Origin: Octopus bimaculoides
Lineage: Eukaryota
Length of the DNA stretch: 64,000 nucleotides
NCBI RefSeq assembly: GCF_001194135.2
Contig: NC_068981.1
Location: forward strand, 100,607,043 to 100,671,042
Direction: 5' to 3'
The translations under genes were made by a program, and so were the position numbers. Positions 38,974 to 39,950 of this stretch are shown here, piece after piece. Numbering within the stretch: the first letter of the stretch is position 1; every line of letters starts with the position of its first letter. The notes under the pieces were generated by a model. It worked only from the letters and a program-made list of their open reading frames with translations. It was not told the DNA's origin and searched no databases.

Positions 38974-39950
38974 TACCATGAAGAAAATCCTTACAGAGCC
39001 CCAGTAGAGTTGGGGTGGAGTCAAAGTAGTTTCCACGATGTTGATGAACAATGTCATTGTAAAGAGAGAGAGGAAGCAAAAGAGAGAGAGAAACAAAGAC
39101 GGAGAGAAGAAAGAGAGAGAGAAGAGAGAGAGAGAGAAGAAAGAGAGAGAGAAGAAAGAGAGAGACAAAAAAGAGAGAGAGAAGAAAGAGAGAGAGAAGA
39201 AAAAGAGAGGGCAGAAAGAGAGAGAGAAGAAAGACGGAGAGAAAAGAGAGAGAGAAAAAAGAGAGAGAAAGAAGAAAGAATGAGAGAAAAGAGAGAGAGA
39301 AAAAAGCGTGAGAGAGAAGAAAGAATAAGAGAAAAGAAAGAGAAGAAAAAAAGAGAGCGAGAAGAAAGAGAGAGAGAGAGAAAAGAGAGAGAGAAAGAAA
39401 ATGAAAAAGAGGAAGAAAAGGAAAAAGAGGAAGAAAAGGAAAAAGAGGAAGAGGAAGAAAGTGAGAAACGTAGTGAAGAAGAAATTGAGAAACGTAGTGA
39501 GGAAGAAATTGAGAAACGTAGTGAGGAAGAAAGTGAGAAACGTAGTGAGGAANNNNNNNNNNAAACGTAGTGAGGAAGAAAGTGAGAAACGTAGTGAGGA
39601 AGAAATTGAGAAACGTAGTGAGGAAGAAATTGAGAAAGAGAGTGAGGAAGAAGAAGAAGAAGAAGAAACCGAAGAAGAGGAGGAAGAGGAGAGTGAAGAT
39701 GAGAAGTCATCTATAATTATTATGGCAGCTTCTGAACAGAGTGAAATCGATCAAGAGGAAACTTCTACGAATCTTGAAAGTAGCATTCAAATGGATGATA
39801 AAAACAAAAAAGAAGAAGAAGAAGAGGATAGTGATGATGATATACCTGTTAAGAGAGCTAACAACAAAGTAATAAGATATTCTCCAGGAGAATCACCTAC
39901 TAATATGTTTGGTGGCAACAGCAACTGGAGAGGTCCTATCTGGTTATGTA
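38974..39950 (+). CDS. GH63-type hydrolase exon M: giant exon with an E/R/K-rich low-complexity insertion (spans a 10-N gap)
   Basis: Strong poly-T tag acceptor followed by YHEENPY in phase 0; ends [24 protein letters not shown] then A|gtaagt. The frame is open on each side of the gap at 39553-39562 and joins if the true gap is 9+24n nt, i.e. the missing part of the 24-nt repeat unit. Confidence 0.78.

Follow-up and report, generated by a model that had tools for sequence, protein, structure and literature searches.

We analysed a 64-kb window of the Octopus bimaculoides genome (contig NC_068981.1, positions 100,607,043 to 100,671,042; coordinates below are those of this whole stretch), the + strand of which carries most of a multi-exon YMR196W-like / MGH1-like glycoside hydrolase gene. 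One exon of this gene, 38974-39950, contains a long open purine tract coding for charged residues; an initial annotation made from the sequence had drawn attention to this tract, and the observation is confirmed here. The tract is likely to be a translated, lineage-specific charged insertion, i.e. a predicted rod followed by an acidic return arm, in a permissive loop adjacent to the enzyme's active site.

The acceptor of the exon lies behind a polypyrimidine tract (38954-38973, + strand; tttatttttattttttttag; pyrimidine fraction 0.89), the junction reading tttttttttag/TAC at 38974, and the donor gtaagt (39951-39956, + strand, phase 1) follows 39950 as TGT A/gtaagt; both sites had been assigned correctly in the initial annotation. 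Upstream, the coding exon 32962-33087 (+ strand, ...LFSETEFLSPFGIRSLSK), delimited by its splice sites and by a 100% tblastn match to residues 630-671 of the RefSeq protein XP_014778922.1, ends in phase 0. Downstream, the next coding exon is 42750-42929 (+ strand), which starts (A)TG AAC... and reads MNYLLHECLDIYYKAYG....

Between these borders, on the + strand, the exon is composed of the following parts. The unique 5' part (38974-39060, YHEENPYRAPVELGWSQSSFHDVDEQCHC) contains the conserved H..PY, and the coleoid loop starts in it. It is followed by the E/R/K block (39061-39468), 136 codons with repeat periods of 15 and 90 nt, and by 24-nt tandem units coding for EKRSEEE(I/S) (39451-39652), of which there are at least 8 copies (period 24, 8.4 copies). 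Then come a (GAA)n poly-Glu run (39647-39687), which is 18 nt longer in O. sinensis, and a unique acidic linker (39688-39877, ESEDEKSSIIIMAASEQSEIDQEETSTNLESSIQMDDKNKKEEEEEDSDDDIPVKRANNKVIR), which is kept in O. sinensis save for a 6-nt indel. The exon ends with a conserved family motif (39878-39950) in which P and E do not vary and NWRGPIW is the counterpart of YWRGPVW, the substrate-binding segment of MGH/GgH (PMC6608630). If the assembly gap described below conceals the minimum of 3 codons, the insert comprises 294 residues between PY and YSPGES, in agreement with the ~294 codons counted initially. Over its whole length the insert has a net charge of about -45, and the tryptic peptide SSIIIMAASEQSEIDQEETSTNLESSIQMDDK is located inside it.

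The exon frame is open on either side of the gap. From 38974 to 39552 it reads YHEENPY...EKRSEE, 193 codons with 0 stops, and from 39563 to 39950, starting at KRSEEES, 129 codons plus one base, again with 0 stops. The stop counts of the three frames are 0/3/19 to the left of the gap and 0/3/25 to the right, i.e. 6 and 44 in total for the other two frames. This three-frame count upholds the earlier statement that stops, e.g. those at 39281, 39309 and 39326, occur only outside the exon frame. The purine tract has 33 T in 631 nt, and a T before two purines nearly always yields a stop in one frame or another. When the tracts were shuffled by mononucleotide, the exon frame remained free of stops in 0.5% of left-tract shuffles, 0.015% of right-tract shuffles and 0/20,000 shuffles of the O. 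sinensis tract; these figures are generous because the repeat units are copies and independence is overstated, but their direction is clear.

A gap of 10 N (39553-39562) interrupts one of the 24-nt units. If the 10 N are taken at face value, the frame is shifted and runs into stops immediately; the length of this gap is however a placeholder and no measurement. The frame of the left flank is set by the acceptor and by the phase-0 end of the upstream exon, that of the right flank by the conserved motif together with the phase-1 donor and the following exon (A+TG gives the Met of ...IWLCMNYLL, as in all cephalopod orthologues). Both flanks break off within the unit GAG AAA CGT AGT GAG GAA GAA AKT (E-K-R-S-E-E-E-I/S), so that the register needs 9+24n nt, and the gap-free exon of O. 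sinensis has exactly 9 nt (GAAAGTGAG) at this point. These 9 nt, the register and the independently fixed frames of the two flanks together argue for in-frame continuity, and continuation of the frame through the gap thus appears the most economical reading.

The orthologue of this exon in O. sinensis (988 nt, L001 63063-64050) belongs to a gap-free chromosome-scale assembly. The corresponding reading frame is likewise uninterrupted there (0/9/36 stops over the three frames). If 9 nt are assumed for the gap, the O. bimaculoides exon measures 976 nt, and the two differ by one 18-nt and one 6-nt indel. The first 429 nt of the exon are aligned without any indel between the two species, including 342 nt of the E/R/K block (39061-39402) that are 92.7% identical; beyond 39402 the repeat units diverge. 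The flanking introns are 92-95% similar by substitution and have 11 indels per ~1 kb, mostly not multiples of three. At this intron rate one would expect 4.6 indels over the 429 nt, where there are none (P = 0.01), and 10.5 over the exon, where there are two (P of at most two = 0.002). Tandem Repeats Finder reported, for one or both species, periods of 15, 90, 18, 24, 12, 9, 6 and 3 nt, each a multiple of three. The total length of the array of 24-nt units (alignment columns 429-690) is unchanged despite the turnover of its units, which suggests concerted evolution under length constraint.

The ratio dN/dS of the ER/K block is about 0.31, a value to which we give little weight because GA-only codons give too little contrast between frames; K/R swaps make up 7/13 replacements. 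Taken as a whole, the comparison points to constraint on frame, length and charge pattern, and hardly any on the exact residues. Such a pattern would be that of a spacer or charged-arm element rather than of a specific binding domain. As a separate observation, the 24-nt units are homogenised within each species: EKRSEEE(I/S) in O. bimaculoides, against five ENEEESKK and four EKVSEEES in O. sinensis.

Apart from the exon tract, the window has a single stretch that is 90% or more purine or pyrimidine, an intronic (CT)76 at 17302-17453, of period 2, followed by (CA)11 up to 17477. It was used as the contrast to the exon tract after the purine-skewed intronic region at 30-31 kb, first considered as a control, had been dropped for not being a GA tract. 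Unlike (CT)76, the exon tract has periods that are multiples of a codon, and the length of its ER/K block is unchanged between the two Octopus species. The proposal that a microsatellite or minisatellite had been captured is no more than an account of origin and finds no support here, and the present tract is better described, as far as sequence can tell, as a codon-periodic and length-stable coding repeat. A (GA)n seed as its origin is nevertheless reasonable, since (GA)n reads (Glu-Arg)n in every frame.

The gene that hosts the tract was assigned to the GH63 clan (GH63, glycoside hydrolase family 63) by several lines of evidence. The spliced exon translation matches the Pfam domains MGH1-like_GH PF22422 (57.4 bits, gathering cutoff 27) and Glyco_hydro_63 PF03200 (39.2 bits, gathering cutoff 22.4), the latter match coinciding exactly with the conserved family motif segment of exon 38974-39950. 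The closest database relative is the O. bimaculoides RefSeq protein XP_014778922.1, nine exons of which are found at 100% in the window; an exact-product look-up of this accession returned no record. Its AlphaFold2 model, of mean pLDDT (predicted local distance difference test) 68.5 with most barrel helices at 82-95, shows the N-terminal beta-sandwich and the (alpha/alpha)6 barrel of the family. The best Foldseek matches of this model in the PDB are the GH63 glucosidase I structures 8E3J and 4J5T and E. coli YgjK (E 1e-12 to 1e-8), with TM-scores that are low, 0.27-0.54, because of the disordered insert. A PDB search with the single host sequence gave no match, but a search with the family profile did.

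Two candidate catalytic residues, D490 (GFLGMDN, putative acid) and E941 (FYEYF, putative base), do not vary among 16 sequences; E941 is aligned to the YEN motif of glucosidase I, and D490 is without significant alignment to a solved structure. All family-invariant residues, including D490, E941 and the Y-P-E of YSPGES, are retained in the host protein. A pseudogene was rejected on this ground and because the nine exons of the window are 100% identical to the RefSeq protein. By its Pfam domains, fold, invariant motifs and NWRGPIW segment the protein resembles the MGH1-like hydrolases of the GH63 clan (yeast YMR196W, Thermus MGH 2Z07/4WVA, Mycolicibacterium GgH 5OHC, glucosidase I 4J5T), from which it differs by a loop with about 282 extra residues. 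Judged by sequence and modelled fold, the host is a YMR196W/MGH1-like glycoside hydrolase of the GH63 clan with predicted glycosidase activity, as the initial annotation had proposed in naming it a GH63-type, YMR196W-like enzyme. An anomaly lies upstream of the window at residues ~85-103 of the RefSeq protein, where a conserved stretch of ~60 residues (GNHGEDVKELYYYL...EYEI.DTG) is replaced by 19 unrelated residues; this is probably a missed exon or another upstream assembly problem.

In the family profile alignment, the WRGP-containing motif of the exon is matched by F..YWRGPVW in Thermus MGH (2Z07) and by WRGPIW in yeast glucosidase I. In the Mycolicibacterium glucosylglycerate hydrolase MhGgH, loop D (residues 346-381, between alpha9 and alpha10) is one of five mobile loops at the active site and bears the substrate-binding Tyr375 and Trp376 (PMC6608630). 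By this alignment the octopus insert lies in the loop equivalent to loop D, ~20 residues before the substrate-binding W of NWRGPIW. To place it inside the catalytic region, as was done initially, is thus fair, the loop being part of the catalytic domain.

We then compared the length of this loop across the family, measured as the spacing from GIRSLSK to the downstream FGG-containing motif, both motifs being present in 102 of the 120 best homologues. The spacing is 29 residues in 90/102 homologues and 27-30 in 93/102. The exceptions are one annelid (44), three hemichordates (64-73; P0006-P0008) and the cephalopods, where Argonauta has 75, two decapodiform sequences have 90 and 144, and the genomic exons of Octopus have 311 and 315. 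The loop of about a dozen residues stated initially for other organisms is confirmed by this distribution; in other phyla the loop is short, with a spacing of 29 residues in nearly every bacterial and animal sequence. The two decapodiform sequences, P0004 and P0005, are uninterrupted on Logan contigs of 3.7 and 3.5 kb (SRR30931884, SRR24189505). This indicates spliced mRNAs, and the enlarged loops of 90 and 144 residues are therefore present in mature transcripts. Elsewhere in the same two sequences, a further loop bounded by YCYDVxKW and ...NCDIISMPDKWEFPW (alignment columns 575-665) carries an acidic insertion of its own, ~70-90 residues long, which is absent from octopods.

In Argonauta, too, the 75-residue loop is enclosed by a phase-0 acceptor and a phase-1 donor (L004 49065-49332), and the same borders are found in the decapodiform genomic open reading frame (ORF) P0243 and in O. 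sinensis. These identical borders speak against exonisation, and the initial claim of an exonised insertion is not supported: the borders shared by Argonauta and P0243 indicate an old exon, inside which the loop grew. The coleoid ancestor already had an enlarged, acidic loop, to which the ER/K block and the 24-nt units were added in Octopus, probably when GAR/AGA/AAR codons slipped in frame or were exchanged unequally. The resulting insert comprises an E/R/K block of ~136 residues, EKRSEEE(I/S) units and poly-Glu of ~95, and a unique acidic linker of ~60. The independent enlargement in hemichordates, together with charged loops in other short ORFs, points to a recurrently permissive site. The latter are charged K/E-rich versions of the same loop found in short genomic ORFs of unidentified animals (P0242, P0245, P0250 and P0251).

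The composition of the E/R/K block is that of a single alpha-helix (SAH), as had been suspected. SAHs are recognised by about 80% or more E/K/R, the acidic residue being Glu rather than Asp (PMC5812594); residues 30-165 of the exon comprise 128/136 E/K/R (94%) and no Asp. In 28-residue windows of the core (starts at exon residues 29-127) we counted 10-18 i+4 pairs of opposite charge and 0-2 hydrophobic residues, with no Pro or Gly, the number of pairs falling to 7 at the acidic end of the block; this tally is a home-made count. The net charge per 28 residues is +8 to +9 in the middle of the block (exon residues 85-126) and -7 to -17 in the acidic arm. AlphaFold2 run on the single sequence gives one helix over residues 29-192 (~160 residues) with pLDDT 94-98 across the E/R/K block. 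In the context of XP_014778922.1 the predicted helix covers residues 690-753 (pLDDT 65-90), followed by a disordered poly-Glu and linker (pLDDT 25-31). At 136 residues, the helix would extend for about 20 nm.

These properties agree with the ER/K single alpha-helix as defined in the literature (PMC5812594, PMC5347031). Like the ER/K domains of the myosin VI/X levers, of the CAF-1 KER (PMC10335832) and of drebrin (PMC12203971), and those of a general survey (PMC5812594), the octopus block has more than 80% E/K/R, Glu as the acidic residue, more Arg than Lys (typical of metazoans), dense i to i+4 pairs, no hydrophobic seam, no Pro or Gly and one long predicted helix. Known SAHs are linkers of two folded domains, levers or spacers, whereas the octopus block, a predicted helix, starts and ends in one loop of a catalytic domain. 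A rod that leaves a loop and comes back into it needs a return path, here provided by the acidic disordered stretch of ~150 residues.

On this basis we propose that the tract is coding within one constitutive exon and that it would occupy a surface loop of the (alpha/alpha)6 catalytic domain. The E/R/K block would form a single alpha-helix rod of ~20 nm projecting from the enzyme, and the polyanionic disordered remainder would lead the chain back to the conserved Y-PGES / NWRGPIW segment of the active site. Asn-rich or charge-rich lineage-specific low-complexity inserts are found in conserved enzymes of Plasmodium and Dictyostelium. The octopus insert resembles them by its in-frame repeat growth at a permissive surface loop, its kept length and frame, its fast sequence evolution and its homogenisation within species; it differs by a composition that predicts an ordered rod and by an ER/K part whose length is stable between species.

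We infer that the insert is retained in octopus mRNA and translated. It could instead be an exitron or an alternatively spliced segment, most or all of the tract being removed, e.g. from GT 39004 to AG 39853, so that the enzyme made would have a near-ancestral loop. Such a splice would be in frame if the gap is a multiple of 3 and would give a spacing of 28, against the canonical 29; each 24-nt unit has cryptic donors of GTGAG type. As in exitrons, the segment is long, internal and of low complexity, its length is a multiple of 3, and GT and AG dinucleotides are present. But the acceptor side is poor: when strength is taken as the pyrimidine fraction at -20..-3, internal AGs reach at most 0.61 (0.50 at 39854) compared with 0.72-1.0 for the real acceptors of the gene, and the earlier remark that the tract has no polypyrimidine-backed internal acceptor is thus correct. 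Moreover, the supposed donor at 39004 coincides with the Val codon of PVE, a motif translated in decapodiform mRNAs. Unlike exitrons, the octopus tract has no polypyrimidine-backed acceptor and shows constraints of coding type; an intronic tract would give no reason for the open frame or for indels and periods in multiples of 3 in two species.

The public gene models bear on the same question, as part of the tract is missing from both. XP_014778922.1 follows the genome for 62 codons of the exon, leaves it at 39160 and re-enters at 39563, a 403-nt skip that exactly repairs the frame break due to the 10 N. The O. sinensis RefSeq model skips 134 codons at nearly the same place (L001 63267-63668). 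The borders of these skips are non-canonical, GA..NN in O. bimaculoides and AG..AA, GA..AA or AG..AG in O. sinensis, contrary to what splicing would predict. The skip of O. bimaculoides is probably a work-around of the gap, i.e. an annotation artefact and no evidence of splicing, and that of O. sinensis was possibly carried over by annotation based on protein homology. Removal of the tract by splicing is in our opinion unlikely.

A second alternative is that the tract is a tolerated repeat without constraint, drifting neutrally in the exon, open only because T is rare, and translated as junk. Its substitution divergence equal to that of introns would fit, as would units homogenised differently in the two species and a loop permissive enough to have grown independently in hemichordates. 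But the ER/K block has the same length in the two species despite indel-prone low-complexity DNA (P about 0.01 at the intron rate), the exon frame is open far more often than in shuffles, and the replacements are mostly charge-conserving. Constraint is thereby shown, at the least, against frameshifts and stops. The downstream catalytic motif would itself impose it, so that neutral drift is only partly separable from the constrained insertion we favour. We consider pure drift quite improbable. Finally, a mis-assembled or chimeric tract around the gap was rejected as highly improbable: the gap does lie inside a repeat, and such purine tracts are hard to assemble, but the independent gap-free assembly of O. 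sinensis carries a colinear tract of the same length in the orthologous exon.

Several points weigh against a translated charged insertion. Both RefSeq models omit about 134 tract codons, so that neither confirms the middle of the tract, and the gap conceals an unproven number of 24-nt units in O. bimaculoides. Substitution divergence of the tract is 7.3%, no lower than that of the flanking introns (5-8%), and frame 2 of the ER/K region gives a dN/dS of 0.45, a weak contrast with the 0.31 of the exon frame. AlphaFold2 readily gives confident helices for charged repeats. Homology searches found no octopus transcript or peptide support for retention of the insert. In these searches, octopod-specific flanks of the insert returned 15 candidates, none of them significant, but the known O. 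bimaculoides protein was also missed, so that this search is uninformative on transcripts. The full exon with its neighbouring exons had no octopod match among the best 8000 candidates, which were filled by bacterial fragments. In an exhaustive search of representative sequences with the right half of the exon, the unique linker was matched only by the RefSeq O. bimaculoides protein, the other matches covering the conserved motif alone; a few short genomic ORFs showed charged loops.

If the insert is translated, about a quarter of the enzyme would be a charged rod and tail issuing from a loop that bears substrate-binding residues in solved relatives. It would be a natural test of the tolerance of catalytic loops and an unusual ER/K topology, out of and back into a single loop. 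The public models of two Octopus species appear to be ~134 residues short, which could mislead proteomics or evolutionary analysis. A functional module of a new kind can also be imagined, with an ER/K rod set into a glycosidase's mobile active-site loop and coupled to a polyanionic return arm. The basic middle of the rod and the acidic arm could zip or open, thereby gating the active site or spacing the enzyme from a charged partner (membrane, nucleic acid or mineral matrix); we regard this as distinctly doubtful. The insert is rather one more case of something already known, namely charged low-complexity segments within conserved proteins, and opens no long-standing question.

The introns of the gene contain other repeated elements. 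The intron just upstream of the exon has a tandem repeat at 38086-38563 (ORFs HRESSPSS... and GKFTTGKVH...) around a second assembly gap, 38380-38528. A broken retrotransposon without long terminal repeats (non-LTR) lies in an intron at 26814-29460 on the + strand, with a weak, below-cutoff match to the endonuclease-reverse transcriptase domain PF14529 at 26814-27482 and an RVT_1 match of 31 bits at 27842-28354. Remnants of Mariner/Mos1-like transposases are found in introns at 598-1268 and 15428-15992, both on the + strand (HTH_48 at 598-906, weak Transposase_1 at 15428-15715). Lastly, a dispersed intronic repeat with + strand ORFs ...FNV(R/H)xPCWHGLDxLT..., probably a SINE-like (short interspersed nuclear element) sequence, is present in at least 6 copies, near 16.7, 34.0, 40.3, 43.0, 44.6 and 52.6 kb.

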